This document shows, in pieces, positions 1 to 58,987 of a DNA stretch of 64,000 nucleotides. Every line of letters begins with the position of its first letter. The first letter of the stretch is position 1. The stretch covers positions 164,857,415 through 164,921,414 of the forward strand of contig NC_092375.1 in the NCBI RefSeq assembly GCF_030028105.1, written 5' to 3'. This stretch comes from Mobula birostris (Eukaryota). Position numbers and translations under genes: made by a program. The notes beneath the pieces are model-generated. The model ran no database searches. It was not told the DNA's origin and saw only the letters and a list, made by a program, of their open reading frames with translations.

Positions 1-1136
1 TACGAAACATCCTGACCACTTTGCTGATAGTTTTGTTAGTGCAATGAGAGAGCTTGTAACAGAAAAATCTGAAGAGGATATTGAAACATTCAGTATTTGC
101 ACCCCTGTGGTTAAAAGTGCATTCCAAATAATAAAGCCGTCTTTACCTGCTCAAAAAGACGTGTCAACTCCTTTAGATACACGTGAACCCACGGAAGACT
201 ATAATTCAGCTAATATGCAGCAGTGTGGAAATTTGTTCCAAGCACAAAGCGGATTTTTGCCAGGGAAACTTGATGAAAATCATCAAGTGTACTTCCAATC
301 CTTAAAGACAGGAAAAGAAGCTGAGGTGATTTATGAAGATAAAATAAGACAGAAAGAATCACAATCTGAAGCAGCAGTTCTAAATTCCACATGGATGGTG
401 AAGACTTCCTCTTTATCAGAGGACAAGGAAACTTCAGTTTATACAAGCTCCTTGAAAAAACAATCACCAGTAGACACAAGAGATTCTCCTTGCAACTTTG
501 AATTTGAGGAAGACCACGTGAAAGCTTTGAAAAATTTTACCAGCATTGACAAAGAAGTTCCAGCAGAGAAACTGGAAGATGTCAAAATAATACCCCATAA
601 ATCGGCACTCACAGAGACAGCAATGATTAATAGATCTGAAATTGGTCAGAAACATCAATGGGAAATTGAAGGCCCATCTTATACTGTGAACCTCAACCAA
701 ACAGTGGAAACACCTAACTTAAAAGATCAAAAACAGGCTCTAGAATCATTCAGTTCATTGATGAAAGAGGCACCAGCAGATGAGCAACATAATAAATTTA
801 TTGATCTGAAAGAATCCCCAGAAGCAGAGACTCATTCCAATCAACTTGACAACCATTGTCCGCCAGTAATTGTTCACTATATTACATCTCCTAAAATAAA
901 ACAAGGAGCTCCTTGTGTGCTTGAATGTCAATTTCATGGGAACCCACAACCTACTGTAATTTGGTACAAGGATGAGCGTCCAATTCCACAAAATAGGGAT
1001 TATGATATCTACTTCACAGAAAATAAATCCTTGTTGACTATTAGCTGTACACACAAAGAACATGAAGGAATTTATTCATGCGTGATATTCAACCAGTATG
1101 GTACTGCAACAACAACTTGCGTCCTTACTTTACAAG
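1..1136 (+). CDS. TTN: Titin Novex-3 region, upstream exon (5' end outside window): unique sequence plus one Ig domain
   Basis: Frame open from nt 2 through ORF 44-1189; Ig CPPVIVHYITSPK...EGIYSCVIFNQYGTATTTCVLTLQ resembles the human Novex-3 Ig (recalled); donor CAAG|gtaaat at 1137. Confidence 0.88.
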
Positions 1137-1233
1137 GTAAAATTCATTATACTTCATTTTGTAATTTTTTTAAAAGTATGTTGCAATAAGATAACTGAAG
1201 ATCATAAATTATTATTTTTTTTTTACTTTTCAG

Positions 1234-4200
1234 ATACTGGACCATTTGAAGAACCTTTGAAAACATTTAATATGCATGTGATAGAAACACCAGAGGACTA
1301 TGCTGAAAAAGAATATCCGGACCATCAGGTTGAAAAGGAAGTTGAGTCTTATTTTCCACCAGCTCCACTAATAAAATCCACACTGCAAATACCAAATGTT
1401 TCAGTACCCCCACCACGTCCAGTAAATTTGTCTACTCTATCATCTGTTGTTGAAATTAAAATAACTGCTCCAACTCCAACACCAGAGCGAGATGAAAAAA
1501 AGAGAGAGTTATTTCAATTAGACGAGGTTGAATGGACAGGTTCACCTCAAGAACCCTCCTCTCAATCTACAAAACATAAATTTAAGTTTTCATTTGATGT
1601 AATTTGTGAACCTCCAGAAGTTGTAAAAGAGTTGGATAAGATTTGTTGTACAGAAGGAGAAACAGTGATGTTTGAATGTGTAATTTCTGGTGAGCCAGCA
1701 CCTGTTGTTACGTGGATTCAAAATGATAGAGTTTTAACTTGTGATACAAGCAAACACCAATTTGAAGAGAGTGGAGGAACTTATAGATTGTATATTAATG
1801 ATGTTTCAGAATCTGATGTGGGGAACTATACGTGCATAGCTAAAAATAAGGATGGGGAAGCACAGAGTACATCTAGTCTCACACTAGAACCTGTAATGCA
1901 TAGTTTCATTTACCATCTGAAAGATATTGAGTTATCTGAGGATGAAACAGAATCACCTGTTAGTAAAATGGACCAGGGTGAAGATGTTGAGCAGCAATGT
2001 CAGAAGGAAAACAGCAATAATTCTCTTCCATTAAATTCAGAGAAACGAACCATTCATGTGGATTCTGAAGTTGGTGATTTTTCTCCAACCACTGCAGATG
2101 GATTTTCAAGCATTGTTTCATCTTTAAAGGAAGACAGCGGCGAAGTTGTATTGGACTCATTGAGTTCTTTTGATAATGAACTTTTAAGTAAAAGTTTACC
2201 TTTAAGAGAAGAAAGTAATGAAATAGTTGCAGAATCAGTGACTAATTTTGTTGATGATATTTCAAATAAATGTCCTTCTTTAGAAGTAATTAATACTACA
2301 ATAATAAGAAATTCAGATGTGACAGGGTCAAAAGCAGAGAAAATAACAGAAGAAACCTGTTCTGTCAGCCAATATTTACGCGATCTTGATAAAAGTCGTA
2401 AGTTATCAGAAGATCAGGAGATGAATAAAGAAATAGAAGTAAAAGACATCAAGTGTGCATTTTTAGAAGAAATTCATGAAGATAGTTTACTTTCAGAAGG
2501 TGGAATTAAGCAAGTTGTTGAAAGTAATAAAGGAGAAGTAGAAAAAATTACCTCAGAGATGGAGTTAAGTCATTCAGTGTTTCAGAAAAATATTTGTGAT
2601 ATTGGTGAAGATTCAGTGGAAACATTTTCTAAGAAGGATGAGCCGAGTGAAAATATTTCCATTGCACAATATCTCCTTACTGCAAGAGAGGAAGAAGCAC
2701 CAATTCATGATTGGGAAAACAATGAGGCCTTTCAGCATGATGAGTCTGGGATTACTTCAATGGAAGTTGAAGAAGTAACATTTTCTGCTGTTTATGACTA
2801 TTATAATCAAAATGAAGAATGGACACGGTCCCTTTCTCCTGAATCTGAAATGTCAATTGAAATTAGTAGCACAATTAGCGATGAAATAGCAGAGAATGAA
2901 AGATTTTATACACCACCCTTGGCTTCAGAAAATTTCAGATCTGTTGTATCTGCAGAGTCATTTCATACACCACTTCAGTCACCTGGCTTTGTGACTCCAG
3001 AAGAAAGATTGCCATTACTTAACGCTGTGGGTAGATCTCCTAATTATGAACTAGAAAGATTTTACACGCCATCAGACCATTTTAGATCACCAATAGATGA
3101 GGGTATTGAAACAACACCTATTGAATGTTCAAGACTCTCCACTGAAGAGCAAAGATTGGAAGCATTTTCAACTCCTCCACAAGAAGCTGAAGCTAAAGGA
3201 AATGAAATGCCTCCAGCATTTATTAAACCCCTTACTAGGAAAAGGATTCATGAAGGAGGCTCACTTACATTTATTACAGAAGTAATTGGTTGCCCAATTC
3301 CAGATGTGAAGTGGTATAGAAGAAAATTGTTATTAGAGCGAAATCACAAAATTAGAGTAGAAAGAGAAGGAAATCTGTGCATTTTAGTGATCCATAACAT
3401 GCAAAGAGAAGATGAAGGAGAGTATATTTGCAATGCTGTTAACGTTGTAGGAGATGCGAAAAGTATTGCTCAGGTGGATGTTTTAGCACAAGATGCAAAG
3501 TTAGTTGCATTGCCACCACCAGTGACACATCAACATGTGATAGAGTTTGATGTACAGCAAGAACAAACATCAAGATCTCCTTCACCTCAAGAAATTCTTC
3601 TGGAAGTTGAACTTGATGAACATGAAGTGAAGGAATTTGAAAAACAGATAAAAATTATTACAATTCCTGAATTCACTCCTGACAATAAAAATATGATCAT
3701 ATCACTAGATGTCCTTCCTGTGATGATTGCTGATGAGTATAATGTAGGCTTGACAGCAAAAGAAAATGGAGATGTGAAAATTGATTTAGAAGTCACTGAA
3801 ATGCCCCCACGGTTTACTAGTTATATTTTTGATCTTGATATTCCAGAAAACACTGATGCAGTATTTGAATGTTCTGTGACAGGTATTCCTCCTCCAGAAA
3901 TAACATGGTTCAAAGATGATTTGCATATAACTGTGGATGGTACGAAATACATTAGAAAAGATAACTCAAATCATAGTCTTAAAATAACAAATGTTTGTCC
4001 TTCTGACAATGGCATATACAGTTGCAAGTTAGTGAATAGTGTTGGAGAAGCAACATGTAGAGGATATCTTGCAGTAACAAACTCAAACATGGCACTAACA
4101 AAAGCAAGTGGTAGAGCTGTAGCTGCTTTATCACTGGCTGGTGCTCATGAACGTTCACAGGAATTAGATGTTGTTGTTGGTGATTCTTCACCAGATGTCA

Positions 4201-4712
4201 ATCATAGTTCAGAATTTGAGGTTGAGTTTGAATTTGAGCAAGGCAGAGATGAATCTCAGAAATCCGTGAAACTTGTTGCTGTAACAGAGAAAGGAAATAA
4301 GGAAAAAGGAGAAAAATGTGTGAATATCAATTTTGATGTATTTGCTGAACCTGCCAAAGATGAGACAATTCAGTTTAAAGCAGAGGCTTCTGAAACATGT
4401 TCATTTGAATTTCAAGTAACAGAGATTCCACCCAAGTTTGTGATTTCACTTCTTGACTGCAACACAGCCATAGGGAACACAGCATCTTTTCAATGCTATG
4501 TAACTGGTACTCCAAAACCAAGTATAAATTGGTATTTCAATGACAGATTACTTGAAGGTACCAATTACCTAATTGGGGAAAAAGATTCTGGGCAACATTA
4601 TCTGAACATTGTAGGTGTTACAGAAAGTGATGCTGGAGTCTACAAGTGCAAAGCCGTTAACAAAGCTGGAAATGCAGTTACATGTGCTGTTTTAAAAGTA
4701 TTTTATGCATAA
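1234..4712 (+). CDS. TTN: Titin Novex-3 terminal exon: four Ig domains and unique segments, ending at TAA
   Basis: Acceptor tttcag|A at 1233/1234 in frame with upstream exon; uninterrupted ORF; VALPPPVTHQHVIEFD, RSPSPQEILLEVEL, KIDLEVTEMPPRF and FEFQVTEIPPKF match the recalled Novex-3 C-terminus; stop 4710-4712. Confidence 0.92.
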
Positions 4713-4810
4713 AATACTTCTGAATGTCCTTTACATACTTAGAATAATGAAGTATTTTGATATTTATCATATGTAGCATGTTTAGGGATGTGTTAATTTC
4801 TGACACAATA

Positions 4811-4816
4811 ATTAAA
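4811..4816 (+). terminator. Candidate poly(A) signal (ATTAAA) for the Novex-3 isoform
   Basis: Variant PAS about 100 nt after the Novex-3 stop, with T/GT-rich sequence downstream; alternative AATAAA at 6214-6219 and 6299-6304. Confidence 0.35.
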
Positions 4817-7800
4817 TTGATTTTAACATTACAAATTTTATTTGGTATTGCTAAAATGTTGAAAAATTTACTCTGGAGTAGTGTATCAGTAGGAAAGCTG
4901 ATATTTAGATGTTTAAAACATTAATCAAGTTAAAATACTGAACATTTTGGATTAAGGACATGAAAAGGTCTGGCTAGTAAGGCTAGTTTGTTGAAAATAT
5001 TGATAACTCAAGAGATTTTGCATGAAGCAGCTAAACCATTAATGTTTAACCTCTTAAACTGTGATTATATTGCATCTGGTCACAATGAAGGTTACAGAAT
5101 TACTGAACTTCCTTTACAATAACTGTAACAAAATTTTACTTTTATATACACTTGATCTTTTTTTCAATTTATGTTGTATATTCACCATCAGACGTAACTT
5201 CCTCCTTTTTAGTTCTTATAGTGTGAGTAAAATATAAAGACATACAGTTGCATTGATGCAAATTAGTTCTATCATTGCTCCTCTATTTCCTGTTCAATAT
5301 TATGATGTATTTAAAAATACCAGGGCAAACTGAATAGGTTGATAGAAGCTTTATTGGGACATTGTAGTTTAGGATGAGCAGACATAATTTCAAAATCAGA
5401 ACCAGGTTTTTCAAAAAATGAATATAGAAAGACTAATACAAGCAGACATTAATAGAAGTTTGGAATCCTCATCTACAGATGGCAATTCCTGTTAAGTCAT
5501 TAAGTATAATACTCATAGTTTCTGTTATTGAAATTAATTAGTATCTAAATGTCAGAACAGACTTATTGCCCTATTGGTTAATTACAGTTATTTTGTTCCT
5601 TTTTTTCATTTGGGCGTAAGTGTTATTTGAAACATTTATCATTTTAAAAACTTAAATTATTTAGGTTAGTTATGCTGAACTTAATATGACATTCTTCTGA
5701 CAATATTTTATATGGATCATGAACCTTATTTATTTTAATCCATCTAAGGTATAAATTATTGCTTTATAGGGAAATACCAAATAAATCATTTGCTAATGTC
5801 TTTCACAACTACAGAATAATATATAAAAATCTAGTATCCTTGAGCTACATGAAAGTGACCTCTCAAATATTGTGTGTTGCAATTGGGAGAAAGATAAACC
5901 AAATTAAATTTCTAAAAAGGGTGCTAACTATCATAAGGCATTCTGAGATGGTCAGATTTCTAGCAGGTCAGAATCCGTGCCTTAAGATGGAATATTATAG
6001 ATGCTTAAACATGATTGTTTTGGTGGCTTTTAAGTATCAATCTGAAAAGTCTAATTCCAATAATTAGAAATAATTAAATTTTATCTACTCTCTCCTCATC
6101 TTCTTTTACCTTCCTTCCCATTTCTTAGCTAAAGTAGAAAAGAATCTATTCCCAGATTTCTACTGCTAGAAAGTGAAGAGTCCATTTGACTCTGCTTCAC
6201 TTTCCAGCCTTCTAATAAAAAGGTGTTTACCATTTCTGTCTTATCCTGTTACCTTCATAAATGAGGCAGGAAATTTGTTGTTATGGAATCGTACATTAAA
6301 TAAACAAATCTTGCCATTCTGTGCTTTAGTTCATTTAAAAACATATAATATGTCTAATAATCTACATGTTTAAAATTAGATTTACTCATTGCTTTTTGTA
6401 TTACTTTATTGTTTTTGTTAATACATTTGTCCTGTCTTTAGACATTAGCAAGGTTCAGAGTCAAAAATGTAAACTTTGGTTCAGACTGAACTAATGTTTG
6501 CTGTTGGAGGAAGTTTATTAAAGATCATGATGGAGTTTCGTAGGTACTGGGGGAATTATTAGTCTGGCAGTCAGACAGTAAAATATTTGATGAGTCCAGA
6601 GATTTTAAAAATAACTTAATAGAGATTATTTCAAAGTGGAAATCTCCTCTTTGATAATCTTGCAAATAATAAAATTGTTTCTGCATTTTTATGAGTCAGA
6701 TCATTGCAGATCATTTTAATATTTACTTTCTAATCAGTTAATCTTACATTTTAAATGAAGTTATTTCATTGCATTGAGTCATTTTTGCACAAACTATATA
6801 AAATATGTGATATTTTAAAATTAACAAGCTTTAGTGGTTTGGATTCCGAAAGTTCATGGCCAATTTATTGAAGTTGTAAATTTAGAAAGCAGGTACCTTC
6901 CGTGACATCAGCATGAGTATTTTAATAAGCACACTTCTAATGATAATCTCAGTATGGTAATCTAGTTGCTTGAAAGCATGCATTGTTTCCTGTTTTATAT
7001 GGCACATTTGACATGATATTAAAGTGTGATTATTATTGCACCTGTTGCGAGGAACTGTTGAATGCTACAACTATTCATTCCTTCTGCAGGTTTCTATTGT
7101 TAGTAATCGTAGTTATGTTTTATTTTACTGTGAACACTTATGTGTGCGCAGCTCCTGGCTCTGTTGTCATGTAAATATACAGCTGGTATGCAAGATATAG
7201 TCTCTTTTGATTATCCCACCACTGCTTAAGACAGAAACTTATACTAAGTTCTGGTTCCAAGGGTGGTAGCAGCTTCCTCTCGTGCTCCTGAACTAAGTGC
7301 TTTGATGTTTGCTTGTTGGGATAAATAGTTTAATTGTAAGTCAATACAGTGAATGTAATCTTGCACTTAATAACTGCAAATACTCCCGTTATGGATTGTT
7401 TGAGATCAGCCTGCAACTGTTGGCTGTTTTCTTGTACTATAGCTTGGAATTACTGATATCAATTTTAACATTTCATTGCTGTCTAGGTAAGAGAAGTTAA
7501 CCTAAATCAGAGATTTATAGGTAGCTTTCAGCTGTTTTGTTGACAACCAAAATTACAGCATTGATTTTGCTATCACCAGGTGCAGTATATTCCTACAATA
7601 TCATAGGAATACAATATCTCTTGATGTGACTTAACAATCAAATTTTGATATATTTGATGAGAAATATGTATTTCAGTGAATGAATAAAGCTTATATTAGA
7701 AATTACTTTTAAGTCTGTTGAAAATTTGTAGCATGCACTACATTTTTGTGTGATAGTAACACTATCATGAATGCCCTGGGCAATGATTCTAGATTTACAG

Positions 7801-8263
7801 AATGCCAGCCACTACTAACAAACTTCAACCTATGTAGTTTGTTTTTTCCACTTTTGAGTTGGACATGCAAATATTGATTACGTATCGGATATTTTAATAC
7901 CCAAGTTAATTGCGTGAAGACACAAATTTTGAATCAGTGAATTTGAATAAATGGTATGTTAAAACAAGTTTAACGAAGTATGTTTTTATTTAAACTACTG
8001 TGGTGTTGCTAAAATTGTTTTTAGGAAAAATAAAACCTCCTTAATTTTCTGAGCTGATTCTATATACAGTGACATGCCTAGTACATATCTAGATTGAAGA
8101 TAAATATTTAAAGAAGATTTATAGAATTTTAACCTTTTGGAGAAAAAGAAGCTTTCCACGAAGTGACATAAATAATTCTGGTGATTTTTGTTTGCTTTCC
8201 AATATTTAGCAGTACTCACAATCAACATGCCTTCTAAACTTAAACATTTTATTTCTTACACAG

Positions 8264-10358
8264 AATTTTCTAGATCTGTATTTATTGCTGCTGAGGATAA
8301 GAGGGAAGGTTTCTACTTGAGTGAACTTGAAACATTTGAACTCAGCACTGAAATTCCTGTTCCGTTGAACATATTGGACAAAAAAATGATGCTGAGCTTT
8401 TAAAATCTGTGCCAGTATTCATCAAATGTATTTCTAAGATGGAGGTGGTTGTGGGAGATATAACTAAATTTTCTGTCACTCTTAGTGGGTTACCTGAGCC
8501 CTCTATTCAGTGGTTTTATAATGGTAAAAAATTGACTCTTTCATTGAATTACAAGTTTGTTTATGCTAAGGATGAATATAGTCTAATTATTCCTTACACA
8601 AAATGTATGGATGAAGGAGAATATACCTGTACAGCTACTAATGTGCTTGGTGAGACTTCATGTAGTGCATACCTAAAAATCAAGCTAAAGGATTTAGGAA
8701 ATCAACTACAAGACCTCCAGTGGCAAAACTTCCAGAAAAAAAGAGAAGTAAAGAAGCTATGATAGTAAAACAAACAAAAGCTTTCTTTGTATCGGGGGGG
8801 TGAGGCACCACAGTTTTATAAATAAATTAAATCTTTGCAGTGCCTTAAAGACGTGCCTGCTAGATTTGAGTTTTTAGTTACAGGAAAGCCAATGCCAGAT
8901 GTGCTTTGGTATAAGGGATAGTACCAGATCAGTCAGTGTGTGCATTACAACCTGAGCTACAACTCCAGTGGCTCTGGTTCACTAACTATCCATAATGCAC
9001 AGAAGGAGGATAGTGGCCGGGACTCCTGCAAAGCATTTAACTCATTTGGAGATGCAACTTGCACTGCAGAGATAATTGTGATTACCAAGTAAAGAAGCAC
9101 AGCCAGACCAAGCAGAACAAACTGAATCCTTTGAAATGAAAATTGACAACTTGCTTCCTGAAGTCAAAACTGATCCTCTGCCAGAAAAATATCTCCCGTC
9201 TGTATCTCTACCTATACAAAAATCAAAAGAGAAAATGTTTACAATTGAAGAAAAAGGGCAGTGTGCAGTAATAAGAGTCTGATAATACTTTCAAACAGTT
9301 CAGTACTACAACAGACTGCGCAATAGTTGAAGATGGTTCTTTTGTCATTTTCAAAGCCATAAATACAGCAGTTTGTGAAAATAAATATGAACCAAAACTA
9401 ACTTCAACTTCTGTGCAAGTTAAAGAAAACACAATGTCTATAGAAAGTACTAATATGCTAGAGTCTGCAGAAGAAGATTTTGTAATAGGGATCCAGAGGG
9501 ACAGTTAGCAAGATTTCCATTGTTGCTTCAAGAAAAACAAATTATTGAAGAAGAACGCTCTTCAGATCTTAAGCTAGGTACAGTTGCAAAGCCAGCTGAT
9601 AGGCTAGAAAAATTAGGCATCAGTATCACTCCTGCAAAAAGGACAGTAGAAGCTGTCAACATTGATGAAAGTAATTTGGATATGGGGAAGGATAGGATGG
9701 GAAGAACTGAACTAAAAATACAGACTGAAGAGTTATTGCAACCTACAGTTACCCAGCAGTACCCAAAGAAAGCAGCACCTAGTTATAAAGGAAAAGAGCA
9801 GCCAGCAGTTTCAGCAGATAAATCAACATCGGGTGTATCAACTGAAGCTATATATCAGGAAACACAATCTCAACAACGTGTAGCAATGGCTAAATCAGAG
9901 GGTTTTTCTCAAGAATTTAAATCTGTAGAGTCAATTGGAAAAATGGAAGTTGTGAGTCATGTAAAAGATATTAGAGATGCAATACTTAGCACTGGTGCCC
10001 CTTCGCTGTCTGTTCTCGTCAAACCCTTGTATTTCTAAAATGAAAATGCCAAGCAAAACACTAATAAAACGTACTATAGTCAATCCAATTATTATTAAAG
10101 GCCTTATTGATATCATTGCAGATGAAGGCAGCCAAGTGACATTTAGCACGTTGATAAAAGGAGTGAGAAGTGTAAATTGGTATATCAATGGGAAGAAAAT
10201 TACTTCAAAAATTAGTTCAAATGTTTTCAGGATTTCGATACATATTCACATAATCAACAAAGTACAGAAAGAGGAACATCAAGGAGAATATGTCTTTGAG
10301 ACACTGATTGAAGCAAGAAAAGCAACTACTTCTGCAAAACTTACTGTTGTAATAAGAG
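8264..10358 (+). pseudogene. TTN: Degenerate cardiac N2B exon (I24, I25, N2B unique sequence, I26) with multiple frameshifts and stops
   Basis: Acceptor ttacacag|8264 and donor AGAG|gttgga 10359; I24 in ORF 8409-8762; I25 GEAPQFYK*...WYKG*...; RFPLLLQEKQIIEEE resembles human N2Bus; I26 ends AKLTVVIR; in-frame stops 8823-25, 8919-21, 9090-92 and several frame switches. Confidence 0.88.
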
Positions 10359-11188
10359 GTTGGATTATGGGGATAAAACTTTATGAATATGAAATTCACA
10401 ATCTAATCCATTCAACTGACAAAACAGTTAACTTTTGTTTTTATTTTACTCTAATAAATTAATATGACTCAATCTTTTGTCCCACCACCCTTTTCCTTCT
10501 TTCTTTCCCATAATATTTTAATGGTAAGGAAGTAATTATGTTACCGATTTGGTATCAAAATAAAATGCCGTCAAAGCTTGTTAAAACCACATTCTTTTTC
10601 CCCCCACGAAATATGCATTATAAATGTTAAATCTTGACAGTATTGTTTTAAAAAAAACTTAATGTGAATTTAATACTCTTTATGTGATCTTCATATGCTT
10701 TTACTAACAATAACAAAGAGCACTTAAAGTTAACCTTATGTTTAAAATATTGCTATGGATATTTTATTCAATTTTTACACTTTTTTATTTTGATATTAAC
10801 AATTAATTAACGTCAACTGCCATTTTAAAATTTTTACTAACACAATATTGCTCTCATCCCCATATCCATTTTTGAGGAGATGCTAGATAATTATCATCAC
10901 CATCACTGTTCCATAATGAGAGGACAATTGAATATTTCTATACTCTTCATACTGTATATGTCAAATAAATGTTGAATTTCACCCATTGAAATATTTTCAT
11001 TGAGCACAGCCAGCTAACAACTTTAAACCATTATTTCTTCTCTACAGTCACTCCATGGATTCTTAATTTCTGCCACCCTTTCTTCTTTCACTTCTGAGAT
11101 TTCAGCGGGCCAGGACTAAACTCTATGCTGAAAGAATTAGTTTGTTGTTACAATCTTCTTACATTTTCTTTTAAATTTATATCTACAG

Positions 11189-11467
11189 TGCCTCCAGCTT
11201 TCAAAAGGAAGATTGAATCACAGGAGGTGATAATTGGACATGCTACTCAGTTTGAATGTGAGGTTGAACCTGTATCTGATGTGAGGTTCCAGTGGTTCCG
11301 GGCTAGAGCCGAACTCCGTGATAGTGAAAAATATAGCATTGTGAACAAGAAATATATTTCCATCTTGAAACTTCTGAAGCCACAGCTAATTGACTGTGGA
11401 GAATATACTTGCAGAGCATCAAACCAGAGTGGAAGTGTAAGCAGCACAGCTAAATTGATTGTGACTG
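11189..11467 (+). CDS. TTN: Titin I27 exon (human exon 50 equivalent)
   Basis: 279 nt, ag|...|gtaagt; VPPAFKRKIESQEVIIGHATQFECEVE...AKLIVT. Confidence 0.93.
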
Positions 11468-11602
11468 GTAAGTAGATTAAGTTTTGATTTTTATGTTTCA
11501 CTTAATAATTCAATTTTCAATTTGATTTGGTCTTAGAAGATTTGCATAGATTTAGCTTTATGTTACCATTTCATGTAATCAGAATGTTAGTTTCATACTT
11601 TA

Positions 11603-12715
11603 AATAATGACCTGGATAGAAGCAACAAAGGTACTACTGCTAAATTTGCTGAAGGCACAAAAATAGATGGCACAGTAACCAGTGAAGGTGACAAAGTGAA
11701 TCTACAAAGGAGTATTGATAGGTTAAGGGAGTGTGCAAAGGTCTGGCAAATTGAGTATCATGTCAAAAAATGTGGAATTGTCTATTTTGTTAGAAAAAAT
11801 TAAGTATATCATCTAACTGGTGAGAGATTGCAAGGCAATCAAGAGAAAATCTGTAGATGCTAGAAATCTGAGCAACACTCACAAAATGCCAGAGGAACTT
11901 AGCCAGTCAGGCAGCATCTATGAAAAACAGTACAGTTGATGTTTCAGGCCGAGACCCTTCTTCAGGATTGGAGAAAAAAGATGAAAAGTCAGAATAAGAA
12001 GATGGAGGAAGGGATTGCAAAACTCTGAGGTGTAGAAGGATCTCAATGTTCTAATGCATGACTCACAAAAGGCTAGACTGCAGGTATTACAAATAGGAAA
12101 GTGAACACAAAGTTATTATTTATTGATAGGTGAATTGAATATCAAAGTGGAAATGTTTTGTGGAGCATTCCTAAGACTTTGGACTACAGCATTCATTATT
12201 GGTCTCATTATATAAAGAAGGATGCTTATACTGTACATTGAAAGCGTTTTAGGAAGGATTTACTAGACTAATATCTCAGATATGCAAGTTTTACAAGGAA
12301 GCACTTTGGAACAGGCTAGGCTCATATTTACTGGGGTTTGAAAGAGTGAGAGGGATCCTGGGAGTCTTCAAAGGGTGGTTGCTGAGAGGAAATTAGCTCT
12401 TGACAGAGCCTCTTAATCTAGTGGTCTCTGTTTAAAAACATGGAGTTACCCATAAAAATAGAGATGAAGTGATACTTTTCTCTCATTGGGTTGTGAATCA
12501 TTGGAATTCTCTTCTTCGAAGGTGGGTGGAAGCAGTGTTTTCAAATATTTTTAAGGTAGAGGTAGATAGATGCTTGTAAAACAAAGAGGTAGGCAAGAAT
12601 ACAGAAATGCGATTACAATCACATTGGTCCTTATTTTATTGAATTGTGGAAGACGTTCAAGGGATTGAGTGGCCTGCTCCTGTTCCTAGTTTGTGTATTT
12701 GTATGTATGTTCATA
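11603..12715 (+). mobile_element. Degenerate CR1-clade LINE 3' fragment, interrupted by a Penelope tail
   Basis: Remnant translation NDLD...AKFAEGTK...LQRSIDRLRE.AKVWQIEY (RT C-terminus), decayed 3' region. Confidence 0.7.
11838..12030 (-). mobile_element. Penelope-like element 3' terminal fragment containing a fossil hammerhead ribozyme
   Basis: Reverse complement of the tail at 48939-49040; minus strand caatcCTGAAGAagggtctcggcctGAAACATCaactg at 11933-11970. Confidence 0.7.
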
Positions 12716-13096
12716 TGTAAAAAGATCATTGTAGTTTGCAAATGAGTGGAGCAATATTACTTTCCAAAATTGTGTAGATTTTGTAAGATGTCTTCTATTT
12801 CTATCACTTCAATTTCATATAACACAAGTATTGAGTTCACATTTCTTTCAGTATCTCTCAATAATGCAATACACATCTTTGGCATTTAAAGCTGTTTTGA
12901 TACCTAGACAAAATTGTTTGAAAAAATATATTTGTTTAATTTGGTAAGATCGATAAGTGATCTAACAAATACATTAGAACATCAGCAGTTCTCTTTCTCT
13001 TAAGGAGATAGGACAATGTACCAGTTCTTAATTATTATCTTAAAATTTAATTCCTTCAGTAAATGACAATACTCAACCCAGATGTTTATTTTGCAG

Positions 13097-13660
13097 AGCT
13101 GACCCCACCAAGCTTTGTAACAAGACTGGCATCAGTAACAACATTTGTAGGTAAAACTGCAAGACTTGAGTGCACAGTAGCTGGATCACCTGTGATTCAT
13201 ACGGTTTGGCAGAAGAATGGTATTAATATTACAGATGAAGAGAACTATAATGTATCAGCCAAAGGCAACAAACGTGCTTTAGAATTTAGTAACTTAAATG
13301 TTCAGAACAAAGGCAACTATTCTTGCAAAATTACCAATGACTGTGGCACTGATATCTGTTATGCCGATCTAATCGTCCTTGACAAACCATATTTCACTAG
13401 GACCCTTGAATCTACTCAGACTGTAATTAACAATAGTGTACGTCTTGAATGTCAAGTAGATGAAGACACAGCAGTAACAATTTCGTGGAAAAAAGATGGA
13501 TTAGCACTTCATTCCAGCAAATATTATAAAATTACATTTGAAGACAAAGTAGCAGTTTTGGAAATCCTGAAAGCTAGATTGAAAGATGCTGGGAGTTATG
13601 AATGCATGGCTTCCAATGAGGCTGGAAGTGATTCCTGCTCAGCACTATTAACAGTTAAAG
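13097..13660 (+). CDS. TTN: Titin I28-I29 double-Ig exon (human exon 51 equivalent)
   Basis: 564 nt, ag|...|gtaaga; ELTPPSFVTRLASVTTFVGK... and DKPYFTRTLES...RLECQVDED. Confidence 0.93.
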
Positions 13661-13974
13661 GTAAGAAATACTGTAAATCACAAGCTGTTTTTAAGCAGTA
13701 CTTGCAGTTACCCAATATAAAACTAAAAATATTTTTTGCAGGTTCCATTATAGCCAATGTCTCTTGCTGTATTATTTGTTTTTCTTTTAATTTTCTTATG
13801 ACATAAGGGCTGGATATTTGGCCCATGTGGGCTCTTAGAGCAATCTCATCAATGCGTTTCTACACTTAGCTGTAACCCACTCCTGTATGTGTATCAACTC
13901 CAACTGAGCTCCTGCCATTTACCTTTCATTGGAGTAGTTTAATGTAGCCAAAAAAAAACTATAAACCAGCATAT

Positions 13975-14100
13975 TTTTGGATTTCTGGGAGGAAACTGGA
14001 ACACCTGGAGCAAACCCACAGAAATCACAGAGACAAAATGCAAACTGAAAATAGACTGCACTGGATTTCAGGAGGAACCTTGGTCAAGGCACATGAGAGG
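13975..14100 (-). mobile_element. Decayed V-SINE/HE1-like fragment
   Basis: gggaggaaactggaacacctggagcaaacccac is the reverse complement of the V-domain motif ggtttcctccgggtgctccggtttcctccc. Confidence 0.5.
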
Positions 14101-14479
14101 CAATAGCATTGACTGCTTTGTGATTGTGCTATGCTGAGAAATACTTTAATCATAGTTTCTGTATTTTACATTTATTCATTTGTACTTCTGATATAGTGAT
14201 TTAATTAAAATATCACGAGTAAAGTAGGTTTTCTAAAGCAGTTGACTCTCTTGTAACTATATCTCATCTTGAGTTTGTTACTTCTGACAAACCTCTTTCA
14301 AAGGACTCCTGCTAGACTCCTTCATATTTTCCTCCATTTGAAGTCAACTGAAATGCTTGACAGTAACTGAAGTTTTACTCGGTTACCTTCACTGATTGCT
14401 CTGTTGCTCACTTGTTTCTGATTAAGCAACACTTCACTTTTGAAATTGTAATTCTTACTTCGAATCCCTTGATAATTCC

Positions 14480-14790
14480 TCCTATCTCCCTGAGCTCATT
14501 AAGCCTCTGAGGTAATTTTGCACTTTCAATTCTGACTTGCTAAGCATTCCTAATTTTAATCACTTTCCTAAGGTAGGCCTTTACTATCAAGCTCTGGAAT
14601 AGTCCTTTGTCTCCCTTCCTTTCTTTCTTTTTTAAGGAGACTTGTTAGAACTCACCTCTTTGATCAAGTTGTCTATAATCAGCTTGTTATCTCCTTTTTG
14701 TGGTTTGTGTTAAATTGTTGTTTATTAGTCATCCTATGAAAGACCTTGGGCGTTACGTATGTGCCTATAATAGTAAATGTCCAAAAAAAT
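14480..14790 (+). mobile_element. Old L2-like LINE 3' end
   Basis: ctctggaatagtcc...cacctctttgatcaag...tgaaagaccttgggcgttacg resembles L2 3' tails; heavily decayed. Confidence 0.3.
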
Positions 14791-14839
14791 GGACATTAAC
14801 CTCTTCCTTGTTACATAATCAGAAATACTGAAGAAATAA

Positions 14840-15160
14840 TGAGAATATAAGAAATAGAGGATCAAGTAATTTGGATCTGTTCAACCATTCATTGTGATAA
14901 AGGTTGGTCTTTTACCTCAGCCATGTTTTCCTGTTCTACCCTATATCTATTATTTTAATATCTAAAAAATTGATCTCTGTCATGAATATACTTATGAAAT
15001 GAGCCTTCATGGCTCTCTTCAGTGGAGAATCCTCGATGCTCTGGGTGAAGAAATGTACAATATTCTGTTCTCAGATCTTGTTATTATGACCCTTGTCTTA
15101 TATGCCCAAACCAGGTAATATCAGCCCTGTCAAATTTTGTAAGGAGTTTGAATTTTTCAT
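14840..15160 (-). mobile_element. Old CR1 3' fragment
   Basis: aatataagaaatagagg...ttcaaccattc opening resembles the other antisense CR1 tails in the window. Confidence 0.4.
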
Positions 15161-16625
15161 GAAATCATTTATTTTTGTAAATTGCTGGGTATAGGCCCAG
15201 ACTACATAAACTCTTCTCATAAGACAATAATTCTATATTAGGAAACACTCTGGTGAATGGATGTACTTTAATTGAATTGGTACTCAACTAGGTATTTGCT
15301 TTTATAAATTGACTGCAAAATTATCTTCAAAGTTCAAAGTATGAACTTTGCAAGGTATGACTTGTCTCCTTACAGGCAGCCACAAAACAAAGAAACCCAA
15401 TAGAGCCCATTAAAAGAAAGACCATGAAAAACTCAATATGCAGAAAAAACTGTGCAAACAATAAAAGTAAGGAAGTAACATTCAGAGCTGAATTTCATGA
15501 AACTGAGTCCACAGCCACAAAGCCAGTCAGCACTGCAGCTGATTCAAGAGTCTGTTATTTGCTGGCCACAGCCTCAGTTCAAATGAATAAATCTCGTGAG
15601 CAGTGAGCTGAACACCGACCCTGATAGTCTTATCTTTTAAAACCAGTTCATTGCTTAAAATCCTCCAAATAGTTGTTTCTCACTCTCGGACATGGGCCCT
15701 GTTGCTTCGATGCATTTTTAGGCCTGGGACCCACTGCCTGGATTCGGCCCATACCTGACCTTTCCAGTATAACCTGGCACTTAAATCCGTCAAACATCAG
15801 CAAGGCAGAGTTGGGTGCTGGAGCCCAGGCCTGCTCTCATAGTCCACTTCAGCAATGACCGTACATTGGCTTATTCCTCGCTCTTGAGCCCTGGCCCCCC
15901 GCCCCCACCTCAACGCAACCATCCTGGACCTTCGAAACTTCAGTTCGCACTCCAAAAATGCTAGGTCAACAAGCAGTTCAAAATCTCATCTCCAAAAAGG
16001 AAGTTAAATGTTATTGATTGAAAAGATTGTTTTTGAGAAAAAGTGTAATTAATAAAGTAGTTAATAGTTTTGTTTGCTGCCAGCAAATTGTTGCTGTACT
16101 TCACCAGTGTTATCCTAAACCAAAACTACAATAGTAACTATCATAAAAAATTTTGCAACTACAATTGTAGTTTTATTCTTTTCATTGGAATTCAGATTCA
16201 TAAAACCTGTGGAAATCTTATTTGATGGTGATAGGGAAGCAGATTTGTTGTGTTTATTTTTTGCTTTTATTTCATAACGGAAGACATTACACATAGAAAA
16301 TTGATCATTTGAAATGGGATGCAGTTACTAAATCAAGATCTCTATTGATGACATGATATTATGAAAACAAAGCCATATTAACCAAAAATGTTATCAACCC
16401 CTAAAATGTAATTGCTGCTTTATAGCCTTAACATTTTTATAACTTTATTTATTATCTGTTTACTTTGAAAAGAAGGAATTTGTTTTTTTTCTTAAATTAT
16501 CACCAAGGAAAAATAGCTTATGTGTTGTAACCTTTCTTTTAACGATTGTCTTGGGATATTAGTTCTCTTTCATAACGGTTTTTACTCTGGCAATTCTTAA
16601 TATTTTTCTTTAAACTTATCTTCAG

Positions 16626-16907
16626 AGCCACCTTCGTTCGTCAGGAGGCCAGAACCATCAATACTGTTGAAAAAAGGTGATTCAGCACACTTGAATTGCC
16701 AAGTGAAAGGGTCTCCTGAAATTAATGTCGCCTGGTACAAAAACAATAAGATTCTCAATTCCTCAGAAAAATACACAATATCATTTACTGACTCTTCAGC
16801 TGAACTTGAGATTAATGATCTAAATGTAGAAGATAGTGGGGATTATGTGTGTGAAGCACAAAATGAAGCTGGGACAGATAGCTGCAGTTCTGTCATTACA
16901 ATCAAAG
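16626..16907 (+). CDS. TTN: Titin Ig exon, 6-Ig repeat 1 position A
   Basis: 282 nt, AG/GT, phase 1-1; EPPSFVRRPEPSILLKKGDSAHLNC. Confidence 0.92.
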
Positions 16908-17029
16908 GTTTGTACAGTATTGATATTGCTACACTTCGCATTGCTGCTATTGAAAAATCCATACTGTTTGTATTTTTAATCTTTTTGAAAAGCAGATAGT
17001 TTGAAAAACATTTATGTATTCCTTTTTAG

Positions 17030-17308
17030 AACCACCCTCTTTTATCAAAACATTTGATCCTACTGAAGTGGTAAGAGGATTCAATTGTACTCTTGAATGT
17101 GAGCTGATGGGTACAACTCCATTTGAAGTTGTTTGGCACAAAGACAAAAAGCTGATCCGATCTAATAAGAAGTACAAGATGATTTTCCAAAATATGCGTG
17201 CTTATCTCCACATTAGTCTTTTTGAGTTCTCAGATGTTGGTGATTATCAATGCACAGTGTCGAATGAAGTAGGGAAGTGTCTCTGTGGTGCAACTTTGAA
17301 AATGAAAG
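17030..17308 (+). CDS. TTN: Titin Ig exon, repeat 1 B
   Basis: 279 nt; EPPSFIKTFDPTEVVRGFNCTLECE. Confidence 0.92.
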
Positions 17309-17409
17309 GTCAGTGATCTCAATGGAAACTGGGAGAAATATGTCCAATAATGTACAAATTTAACAGATGGACAGATAATGTATAACCCACTATTTTTATT
17401 TTAAATTAG

Positions 17410-17688
17410 AACCACCATCATTTGTGAAGAAAATTGAAAACGCAACAGCAATTTTGGGAAGTTCAGCAATGTTTCAATGCAGCATAAAAGGCTCAATGCC
17501 AATCACTGTAACTTGGCTGAAAGATAAAGATCTTATCACAGAAAGCAGTAATGTCAAAATGACTTTTGAGAATAATATTGGTACTCTTCACATTGCTGCT
17601 GTAGAAATGAACAGCAGTGGCAGATACACTTGTCATGCAGAAAATGATGCAGGAAGTCAGAAGTGTCTAGCAACATTAATTGTGAAAG
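17410..17688 (+). CDS. TTN: Titin Ig exon, repeat 1 C
   Basis: 279 nt; EPPSFVKKIENATAILGSSAMFQC. Confidence 0.92.
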
Positions 17689-17779
17689 GTCAGTTTGACA
17701 ATATATTGGTCTGGTTTATAAAACAACATACTTTGCATTGCTAAGCTTTATTAATGTTAACCATTCCATTTCACTACAG

Positions 17780-18058
17780 AGCCAGCAAATATCGTAGAAA
17801 AAGCAGAACCAATTAGTGTGACTGCTGGAGACCCAGCAACTTTGGAGTTCGTAATAACTGGCACACCAGAACTTAAAATTAAATGGTTTAAGAACGGGAA
17901 GGAGCTAATATCCAGTAGAAAATGTAAAACAAGTTTATTAAATAAAATTGCCAGCCTAAGGATTATTTCTGCAGAAAATAAGGATAGTGGTGAATATACT
18001 TTCGAGGTAAAAAACGATGTGGGGAGTTGCAGCTGCAAAACTTCTATTACAGTATTGG
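17780..18058 (+). CDS. TTN: Titin Ig exon, repeat 1 D
   Basis: 279 nt; EPANIVEKAEPISVTAGDPATLEF. Confidence 0.92.
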
Positions 18059-18155
18059 GTTAGTACATAACTTATACCTCCCTTTCTTTCAATAATTTAA
18101 GCATAATTTAATTAATTCAAGTAATATCATTGATTTGTTGCTCTGCCTCGGACAG

Positions 18156-18443
18156 ATCGTATGATTGCTCCAACCTTCACTAAAAAACTGAGGAAAATGA
18201 CCAGCAATTTGGGTGCGACCTTTCATATGGATTGCAAGTTCTCTGGTTCTATCCCTGTTGGTATTTCTTGGTATAAAGATGACAAAGAGTTATCAGCCAA
18301 TGATAAGTACACAATGTCGTGTCAAGACAACACTGCTGCTTTGACGATTAAACAATTAGAAATTGCGGATGGTGGAACTTACTCCTGTAAAGCTACTAAC
18401 TCTGCAGGAAGTGATGAATGCAGTGGAGTCTTAAACGTAAAAG
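18156..18443 (+). CDS. TTN: Titin Ig exon, repeat 1 E
   Basis: 288 nt; DRMIAPTFTKKLRKM. Confidence 0.92.
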
Positions 18444-19108
18444 GTCTGAATTAGTAATTTAATTTTGACTTAAGTCATTTGCTAATGTAGCTTTGTTCCT
18501 TCTGCAAAACTGTTTTCATTTTTAATACATATTCATTGATAAATATGTTGAGATCTGGCAATATTTTGGAGCATTTTTGCTTTCTTAACATCTGTTGCTG
18601 TGTCTCTGCCAAGGAAGCATTTATGTTATGTTACCTTTCAGTTTTCTATCTAATGATCCATAATACTTGCATGAAGCTTGATAGAGACAATTAGTAGAAT
18701 ATTCAATTATAGTAGTCCACCTTGCAGAGCTGCTACCTGCCTTTATTCAATGACAATATGCACAATATTCAAGTCAAATATTGGAAATAAGCATCCTATA
18801 GTTTTTTTTCTCTCTTATACCTCACTTCTGTTTTATAATGGTGTCACTTTCATCCTTTGGAGATCAGCTTACAAAGTACAAATTAGCAATTATTCCTTGT
18901 ATGTTCTGGTTTGTGTTAGTTAACTACTTGACAGATTACTGTGCCTTTTCAATATTAGAATGTATTCAGTTATCTGATTCCAAATATTTAAAGTACTAGT
19001 AGACTACTGAATTTATGACAGTGTACATCTTCAGAGAAGGTGGAGAAAACTTACTTGATATGTTTAATTGTTATGAATTATTGTGATGTTTTTTAAAATG
19101 TCTTTTAG

Positions 19109-56950: not shown

Positions 56951-58987
56951 TAGAAACCATAGAAAAACTACAGCACAGAAACAGGCCTTTTGGCCCTTCT
57001 TGGCTGTGCTGAACCATTTTCTGCCTAGTCCCACTGACCTGCACACGGACCATATCCCTCCATACACCTCCCATCCATGTATCTGTCCAATTTATTCTTA
57101 AATGTTAAAAAAGAACCCGCATTTACCACCTCCACTGGCAGCTCATTCCACACTCCCACAACTCTCTGTGTGAAGAAGCCCTCCCTAATGTTTCCTTTAA
57201 ACTTTTCCCCCCTCACCCTTAACCCATGTCCTCTGGTTTTTTTCTCCCCTTGCCTCAGTGGAAAAAGCCTGCTTGCATTCACTCTATCTATACCCATCAT
57301 AATTTTATATACCTCTATCAAATCTCCCCTCATTCTTCTACGCTCCAGGGAATAAAGTCCTAACCTATTCAACCTTTCTCTGTAACTGAGTTTCTCAAGT
57401 CCCGGCAACATCCTTGTAAACCTTCTCTGCACGCTTTCAACCTTATTAATATCCTTCCTGTAATTTGGTGACCAAAACTGAACACAATACTCGAGATTCG
57501 GCCTCACCAATGCCTTATACAACCTCATCATAACATTCCAGCTCTTATACTCAGTACTTTGATTAATAAAGGCCAATGTTCCAAAAGCTCTCTTTACGAC
57601 CCTATCTACCTGTGACACCACTTTTAGGGAATTTTGTATCTGTATTCTCAGTTCCCTCTGTTCTACTGCACTCCTCAGTGCCTTACCATTTACCCTGTAT
57701 GTTCTACCTTGGTTTGTCCTTCCAAAGTGCAATACCTCACACTTGTCTGTATTAAACTCCATCTGCCATTTTTCAGCCCATTTTTCCAGCTGGTCCAAAT
57801 CCCTCTGCAAGCTTTGAAAACCTTCCTCACTGTCCACTACACCTCCAATCTTTGTATCATCAGCAAATTTGCTGATCCAATTTACCACATTATCATCCAG
57901 ATCATTGATATAGATGACAAATAACAATGGACCCAGCACTGATCCCTGTGGCACACCACTAGTCACAGGCCTCCACTCTAAGAAGTAATTCTCTACTACC
58001 ACTCTTTGGCTTCTTCCATTGAGCCAATGTCTAATCCAATTTACCACCTCTCCATGTATACCTAGCGACTGAATTTCCCTAACTAACCTTCGATGCAGGA
58101 CCTTGTCAAAGGCCTTACTGAAGTCCATGTAGACAACATCCACTGCCTTCCCTTCATCCACTTTCCTGGTAACTTCCTCGAAAAACTCCAATAGATTGGT
58201 CAAACATGACCTACCATGCACAAAGCCATGTTGACTCTCCCTGATAAGTCCCTGTGTATCCAAATGCTTGTAGATTCTGTCTCTTAGTACTCCTTCCAAT
58301 AACTTGTCCACTACCGACGTCAAACTTACCGGCCTATAATTTCCCGGATTACTTTTCAATCCTTTTTTAAACAACGGAACAACATGAGCCATTCTCCAAT
58401 CCTCCAGCACCTCACCTGTAGACACCGACATTTTAAATATTTCTGCCAGGGCCCCCGCAATTTCAACACTAGTCTCCTTCAAGGTCCAAGGGAATACCCT
58501 GTCAGGTCCTGGGGATTTATCCACTTTAATTTGCCTCAAGATAGCAAGCACCTCCTCCTTTTCAATTTGTACAGTTTCCATGATCTCACTACTCGTTTCC
58601 CTTAATTCCATAGACTTCATGCCAGTTTCCTTAGTAAATATAGATGCAAAAAACCCATTTAAGATCTCCCCCAGCTCTTTTGGTTCTGCACATAGCCGAC
58701 CACTCTGATCTTCAAGAGGACCAATTTTATCCCTTACAATCCTTTTACTCTTAGTATAGTTGTAAAAGCTCTTTGGATTATCCTTCACTTTGACTGCCAA
58801 GGCAACCTCATGTCCTCTTTTAGCCCTCCTGATTTCCTTCTTAAGTATTTTCTTGCGCTTTTCATACTCCTCAAGCACCTTATTTACTCCCTGTTTCCTA
58901 TACATGTCATACAACTCTCTCTTCTTCTTTATCAGAGTTGCAATATCCCTTGAGAACCAAGGTTCCTTATTCCTATTCACTTTGCCT
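56951..58987 (-). mobile_element. Young 5'-truncated CR1 LINE; ORF2 RT portion still open (57025-58980, 651 aa)
   Basis: PGNYRPVSLTS, QHGF...SCLTNL, VYMDFSKAFD, GVPQGSVLGPLLF, SKFADDTK; CR1 3' tail at 56951-57024. Confidence 0.95.

Follow-up and report, generated by a model that had tools for sequence, protein, structure and literature searches.

The titin (connectin) gene that is carried in part on the + strand of the window, by which we mean the whole 64-kb stretch of DNA analysed, runs from the Novex-3 exon through a decayed N2B exon to the I27 exon and onward. The explanation that accounts best for the data, to which we assign a probability of roughly 0.8, is that the N2B orthologue at 8264-10358 lost its coding capacity in an ancestor of the window species, has since drifted in an intron-like manner and is skipped by titin mRNA, including that of the heart. 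The N2B unique sequence is an extensible spring and a signalling hub (FHL1/2, alphaB-crystallin, PKA/PKG/ERK sites), and N2B is regarded as the defining heart-specific spring and signalling platform of titin. The original prediction, according to which the N2B exon is pseudogenised inside an otherwise intact and expressed titin gene, is upheld by intact orthologues, by read contigs that are identical to the window, by lesions that are nested among relatives and by RNA data.

Lesions were called by nucleotide alignment to two intact skate orthologues. One of them, L001, is a skate-like 9.8-kb genomic contig (Logan assembly of SRR17051962), which was recovered with the I27 exon as bait and is colinear with positions 5950-15054 of the window at 70-80% nucleotide identity; its N2B exon (L001:2289-5828) comprises 3540 nt, is open, has phase 1-1 and contains no stops. 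The other, L003, is the titin locus of Rhinoraja longicauda (GCA_053455715.1), which is colinear with 1260-18612 of the window and likewise possesses an open phase 1-1 N2B exon without stops (L003:7779-11384, 3606 nt). Among 'titin-like' proteins, the N2B product of L001 shares 83% identity with one of Rhinoraja longicauda and 59% with that of the carcharhiniform houndshark Mustelus asterias (GCA_964213995.1), which has an intact N2B product of 1350 amino acids and was compared at the level of the protein sequence only. Teleosts, too, have related 'titin-like' proteins of similar length. In Rhinoraja (L003 6001-12228, 1185 amino acids) and Mustelus (1350 amino acids), the N2B exon is annotated as a separate 'titin-like' gene, which is nested in a giant titin gene model of 35,045 and 32,672 residues, respectively; the separate gene model is probably an annotation artefact that results from heart-specific splicing.

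Colinear blastn matches with L003 and L001 place the window exon between the Novex-3 and I27 exons, where it forms a single block with the order Ig, Ig, unique sequence, Ig between a conserved acceptor and a conserved donor. The landmarks of the locus are as follows.

1098-4712, + strand: Novex-3 exon with an open reading frame of 1204 amino acids, the intact control; 81.7% nucleotide identity to the Rhinoraja locus (L003:1-3903).
8262-8263, + strand: conserved AG acceptor with pyrimidine tract; its context, tatttcttacacag before and AATTTTCTAG after the splice boundary, is almost identical in both skates.
8264-10358, + strand: N2B pseudo-exon of titin with remnants of I24, I25, the N2B unique sequence and I26, colinear with the intact skate exons.
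10359-10360, + strand: conserved GT donor (AAGAG followed by gttggattatgggg), identical in L001 and L003.
11189-11467, + strand: I27 exon, intact and expressed (RNA contigs of the libraries X21, X25 and X11).

Identity of the Ig remnants of the window amounts to 69-76% with the skate domains and to 63-71% with the Mustelus domains, values that indicate an elasmobranch, though no close relative of either. Pfam I-set matches were obtained for I24, I25 and I26, the last of these being weak. As far as sequence comparison goes, the colinear order of Novex-3, N2B and I27, together with the intact skate exons at the same place, identifies 8264-10358 as orthologous to the titin N2B exon (human TTN exon 49). 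What the window exon lacks is a continuous reading frame with a length that is a multiple of three: it measures 2095 nt, which leaves a remainder of 1 on division by 3 and is incompatible with a phase-1/phase-1 titin exon. The neighbouring exons are sound, as had been foreseen for Novex-3 and the 60 downstream exons: the reading frame at 1098-4712 is open, 60 of the 60 Ig-sized exons downstream (11188 to 63241) are uninterrupted, and stops were found in only one of the 68 Ig-like loci on the + strand of the window, namely I25, the 67 others being clean.

Several other elements were seen in the course of the analysis. Upstream of the main Novex-3 reading frame lies a 381-codon open frame (44-1189), which ends in an Ig domain and is apparently parted from the Novex-3 frame by a very short intron (about 1165-1230), so that the Novex-3 region seemingly consists of two exons. 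The intron after I27 contains, at 11836-11980, a very high-copy interspersed repeat with the recurring core AGGTCAGGCAGCATCTATGGAAA and a SINE-type look, the summed contig depth of which reaches 10^4-10^5 in RNA and DNA runs of several species. Two reverse-transcriptase reading frames (651 and 638 amino acids) and an adjoining endonuclease-like frame are located on the - strand at 57025-58980, 59925-61841 and 61842-62812; they lie antisense in titin introns and look like LINE insertions with apparently intact frames.

Compared with the intact orthologues, the window N2B exon carries at least eight frameshifting indels and two nonsense codons. In the list below, organism A is the window species, and its relatives are organism B (about 2% divergent), organism C (about 4%) and organism E (about 5-7%).

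8380-8386, + strand: A7 run with a 1-nt loss against both skates; organism C has one A more, and organism B equals the window.
8409-8690, + strand: I24 remnant, open but out of the entry frame; Pfam I-set E = 2e-21, 75.5% identical to skate I24.
About 8688-8692, + strand: 13 nt deleted from the I24-I25 linker; organism C retains them, A and B do not.
8794-8800, + strand: G7 run with a 1-nt gain, confined to the window species among those compared; the run is one base shorter in B DNA, B RNA, C, E and the skates.
8805-9086, + strand: I25 remnant with two in-frame stops and a lost Tyr corner, from alignment to the skates.
8823-8825, + strand: TAA nonsense codon in I25, GAA (Glu) in the intact orthologues.
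8919-8921, + strand: TAG nonsense codon in I25, AAT/AAG in the intact orthologues.
About 9017-9022, + strand: loss of the Tyr corner of I25, DSGRDSC versus DSGLYSC.
9082-9115, + strand: deletion junction, with about 1.3 kb of the N2B unique sequence gone; skate residues about 307-749 are without counterpart.
9274-9275, + strand: 2-nt loss in the unique sequence, from alignment to the skates.
9494-9495, + strand: 1-nt loss in the unique sequence, from alignment to the skates.
9520-10038, + strand: longest open remnant of the unique sequence, 172 codons within about 1 kb of non-Ig sequence, out of frame with I26; aligns with Mustelus N2B.
10085-10358, + strand: I26 remnant, in which 1 nt is missing from the A-run 10207-11 and 2 nt are missing at 10249.

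Read from the acceptor, the entry frame stops at 8401-03, after the A7 loss and 46 codons into the exon. Together, the 13-nt loss and the 1-nt gain make a net difference of 12 nt, which leaves I24 and I25 in one frame, and the linker between them is read out of frame with three consecutive stops (8763-71). The large deletion amounts to 1301 or 1358 nt against the two skates, with a remainder of 2 on division by 3 in both cases, and I25 and the sequence past the junction are in different frames; the missing unique sequence was searched for in the whole 64-kb window and was not found elsewhere in it. The frame changes once more at about 10030-10085, between the 172-codon stretch and I26, and within I26 the 14 codons between the two losses are out of frame and include a TAG (KN*FKCFQDFDTYS versus KNEFKCFQDFDTYS in the skate). 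The original prediction had named most of these lesions, and the alignments bear it out for every lesion named, to within a few bases: the frameshift at A7 is the 1-nt loss, the switches near 8706 and at G7 correspond to the 13-nt deletion and the 1-nt gain, the break near 9090 is the junction of the large deletion, those near 9275 and 9490 are the 2-nt and 1-nt losses at 9274 and 9494, the break at 10000-10080 falls between the 172-codon stretch and the start of I26, and the compensating pair in I26 consists of the losses at 10207-11 and 10249; the two stops outside homopolymers and the lost Tyr corner of I25 were likewise recovered.

The N2B unique sequence is poorly conserved even among intact orthologues, and the remnant of the window aligns with Mustelus N2B over 176 positions at 40% identity. 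An exhaustive phmmer search with the 172-aa remnant returned one spurious low-complexity match only, and a word-based search returned nothing; the unique sequence has diverged too far to serve as bait. The segment 9505-10020 aligns with the houndshark protein and hardly with the two skates, which, judging from these alignments, appear to have replaced it or to have diverged strongly in it. None of five window reading frames was present in the protein collection by exact look-up, and a PDB search with I24 gave generic titin and Ig matches, which hold no information on orthology.

The distribution of the lesions among the relatives is nested. Organism B, which differs from the window by 39 substitutions in 2118 nt, has in common with A the large deletion, the 13-nt loss and the losses of 1 nt at 8380 and 2 nt at 10249. 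The extra G at 8794 is missing from it, and a 10-nt deletion at 9218 occurs in B alone. Organism C keeps the full-length A-run at 8380, the 13 nt and the TT at 10249, and once its indels are introduced into the window, a single frame runs again from 8266 to about 9090; organism C nevertheless still carries the large deletion, which is out of frame, and lacks the same single nucleotide in I26 (10207). Organism E spans 9082-9115 without the 1.3 kb, has no extra G and shows a 1-nt gain of its own at 8849. At the 9082-9115 junction, no large gap interrupts the contigs of B, C and E. The 1.3-kb deletion is thus found in A, B, C and E, the loss at 10207 in A, B and C, and the 1-nt, 13-nt and 2-nt losses in A and B, which, with the exon intact in the outgroups (two skates and the houndshark), is a distribution of the kind that a unitary pseudo-exon shows. 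The alignment over skates, houndshark and relatives reveals several lesions that are shared and not private to one assembly. Neutral decay after one ancestral inactivation predicts such nesting, and the pattern dates the loss to the time before the A-E split and after the split from the skates (dS about 0.43). A and E differ by 7% within the pseudo-exon, by 5.5% within 11012-11824, which is mostly intron, and by 2.7% within 13001-13446, which is mostly exon. As a separate observation, the match between the window and the contigs of organisms C and E breaks off at about 9262-9265, C continuing with at least 345 unlike letters, and resumes at about 9400 in C and at about 9615 in E. Such breaks hint at another rearrangement or insertion at 9262-9615, which differs among the relatives.

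The rate of amino acid change is of limited use for recognizing the decay. Between L001 and L003, both of which are intact, dN/dS of the N2B Ig domains is about 0.49, compared with 0.06 for I27, and these domains are much less constrained than I27, the constitutive Ig domain beside them. Between the window and the skates, I27 reaches 0.09-0.15, and the N2B Ig domains yield 0.33, which is not above the value of 0.49 between the intact skates. As the N2B Ig domains evolve fast even in intact skates, dN/dS over such long branches is uninformative for decay.

Titin-expressing RNA libraries of unspecified tissue were available for organism A (X21 and X25) and organism B (X11). In X21 and X25, the depth over 8200-11109 is 0, and I27 is covered at depths of 25 and 6.3. 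In X11, fragments of the pseudo-exon reach a depth of 2.4-4.8, which equals the level of the flanking intron, compared with 72.5 for I27; one X11 contig runs from 10274 through the donor into the intron up to 10856 and represents unspliced precursor, and X11 contigs are continuous over the end of I24 into I25 (8584-8816). In all three libraries, I27 is spliced to the next exon (joint from 11466 to 13096, 13096/7, with GT..AG). The I27 contigs, in three of three cases, extend by 28 letters of the upstream exon and two letters matching the intron AG, and this overhang of 30 letters, set against a word size of 31, is read as a sign that the upstream exon of I27 has more than one downstream partner. 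The pseudo-exon is absent from the titin mRNA contigs of the sampled libraries. To our knowledge, skeletal muscle skips N2B in all vertebrates studied; the RNA data are therefore compatible with the loss and are no proof of it for the heart.

Three of the indels sit in A or G homopolymers, which raises the question of whether the exon is in reality open and the lesions stem from assembly or sequencing errors. This is scarcely conceivable, given that a 14.6-kb contig that was built independently from reads of the same source sample shows 0 differences from the window over 2201 nt, restoring no open frame, that most lesions (the 13-nt, 2-nt and 1.3-kb deletions, the two nonsense substitutions and the Tyr corner) lie outside homopolymers, that lesions are found again in the independent data of three further species and that the 67 other Ig loci of the window are clean. 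The identical contig is weak support by itself, as it comes from the same sample, and the data of the other species weigh more. The lesions are genuine and not assembly noise, in line with what had been expected. It is also very unlikely that N2B is supplied by another copy, i.e., a second titin gene or a relocated exon that renders the window copy redundant. Teleosts do retain two titin genes, ttna and ttnb (PMC9575118); however, the source run holds one contig that matches the region at an identity of at least 85%, the missing unique sequence is absent from the whole window, the elephant shark is reported to have a single connectin gene (PMC12198301), Rhinoraja has one giant titin model, to which the window locus is orthologous, and the I27 and I28 exons of the window locus are the ones found in RNA.

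The intact outer splice sites leave room for two further proposals, in which the exon is still used in some form. It might be retained in the heart in a reduced version, internal splice sites or a new acceptor past A7 salvaging I24 or other pieces, and the uninterrupted, high-scoring I-set domain I24 (8409-8690) and the perfect conservation of both outer splice sites would fit this idea. We consider it improbable, as no in-phase GT donor was seen by eye between I24 and the triple stop at 8763-71, no RNA contig of organism A covers the region, those of organism B are continuous over 8584-8816 and through the exon donor, and the changes in I24 between A and B are mainly non-synonymous (four of five among the differences listed, which are small counts). 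Alternatively, the exon could act as a terminal coding exon of a short, Novex-3-like titin that ends 46 codons in, at the stop 8401-03, and a truncated titin isoform is already made from the neighbouring Novex-3 exon (PMC9575118). The nil coverage in organism A and the intron-level coverage in B do not agree with such a product, and an mRNA of this kind, with hundreds of downstream junctions, would be a target for nonsense-mediated decay, which makes a terminal exon highly unlikely.

We therefore return to the ancestral loss of coding capacity, followed by drift and skipping. The ancestor of the window elasmobranch and its close relatives would have lost the coding capacity of N2B. Of the lesions that can be placed, the oldest are the deletion that removed about 1.3 kb of unique sequence and shifted the frame, and the loss of a single nucleotide in I26. 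The 1-nt, 13-nt and 2-nt losses would then have occurred in the common ancestor of A and B, followed by private changes, i.e., the 1-nt gain in A, the 10-nt loss in B and the 1-nt gain in E. Inclusion of the exon would end translation after 46 codons, upstream of more than 60 exons in the window alone, so that mature titin mRNA must skip the relic. The same follows from two experimental systems, as summarised in PMC9575118: a stop codon in the included N2B exon is lethal in zebrafish, and N2B knock-out mice (Ttn delta-49, Radke et al. 2007), in which the exon is cleanly removed, are viable and fertile, which leaves skipping as the sole viable reading. We infer that the relic is skipped in heart titin and that the proximal Ig segment is joined directly to I27, in which case the heart would depend on a titin of the N2A type, whose springs are confined to tandem Ig and PEVK. 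That the splice sites are conserved and I24 is open is most likely due to the inactivation having happened only a short time ago.

A literature search for natural N2B loss or an N2B pseudo-exon found no report. The supposition that elephant-shark heart connectin skips N2B, which had accompanied the original prediction, proved to be incorrect: the elephant-shark ventricle expresses an N2BA isoform that contains N2B (Hanashima et al. 2025, PMC12241362), and the decay thus represents a derived loss within the cartilaginous fishes. We lean, with some reserve, towards the view that a group of elasmobranchs (at least four species sampled, with up to about 7% neutral divergence) has long lived without the N2B cardiac spring and with a heart that works on N2A-type titin. 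If this is true, it contradicts the notion that cardiac titin cannot do without N2B in any jawed vertebrate: a decayed N2B exon in a titin gene that is under selection would amount to a natural N2B knock-out experiment, in which the element is dispensable. It would also offer a system in which to ask what compensates for the loss, e.g., a longer tandem-Ig segment, PEVK splicing or a low-pressure heart, a question that bears on diastolic stiffness, on the mouse N2B knock-out and on therapies that manipulate titin splicing. For genome annotation, a decayed N2B exon is a place at which gene predictors are liable to stumble; the intact skate and houndshark exon already stands in the annotations as a 'titin-like' gene of its own within titin.

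The N2B relic is of interest for titin biology and comparative cardiac physiology. Like the N2B exons of other jawed vertebrates (human TTN exon 49, elephant-shark LC422594, Rhinoraja and Mustelus), it occupies the position between Novex-3 and I27, and it has the composition of the intact exons of Rhinoraja, Mustelus and others, i.e., two Ig domains, unique sequence and one Ig domain between phase-1 splice sites; its Ig remnants are 63-76% identical to the skate and houndshark N2B domains. Unlike these exons, its frame is broken at ten or more places and about 1.3 kb of unique sequence are gone; in the elephant shark, the N2B segment is expressed in the ventricle (PMC12241362). The Ttn delta-49 mouse is similar in that its titin is devoid of the N2B element with the remainder in frame, a state that would apply here by inference; according to PMC9575118, however, the mouse carries a clean in-frame exon deletion and shows diastolic dysfunction and a small heart, whereas the loss in the window is natural, is apparently common to a group of species and leaves a relic exon that must be skipped. 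Stop codons within the N2B exon are also known from the zebrafish mutant pickwick m171, which has a nonsense mutation in the unique sequence of ttna N2B (PMC9575118). In this mutant, the exon is included in heart mRNA, thereby truncating titin, and homozygosity is lethal (PMC9575118); the stops of the window, by contrast, would be tolerable only if the exon is no longer included.
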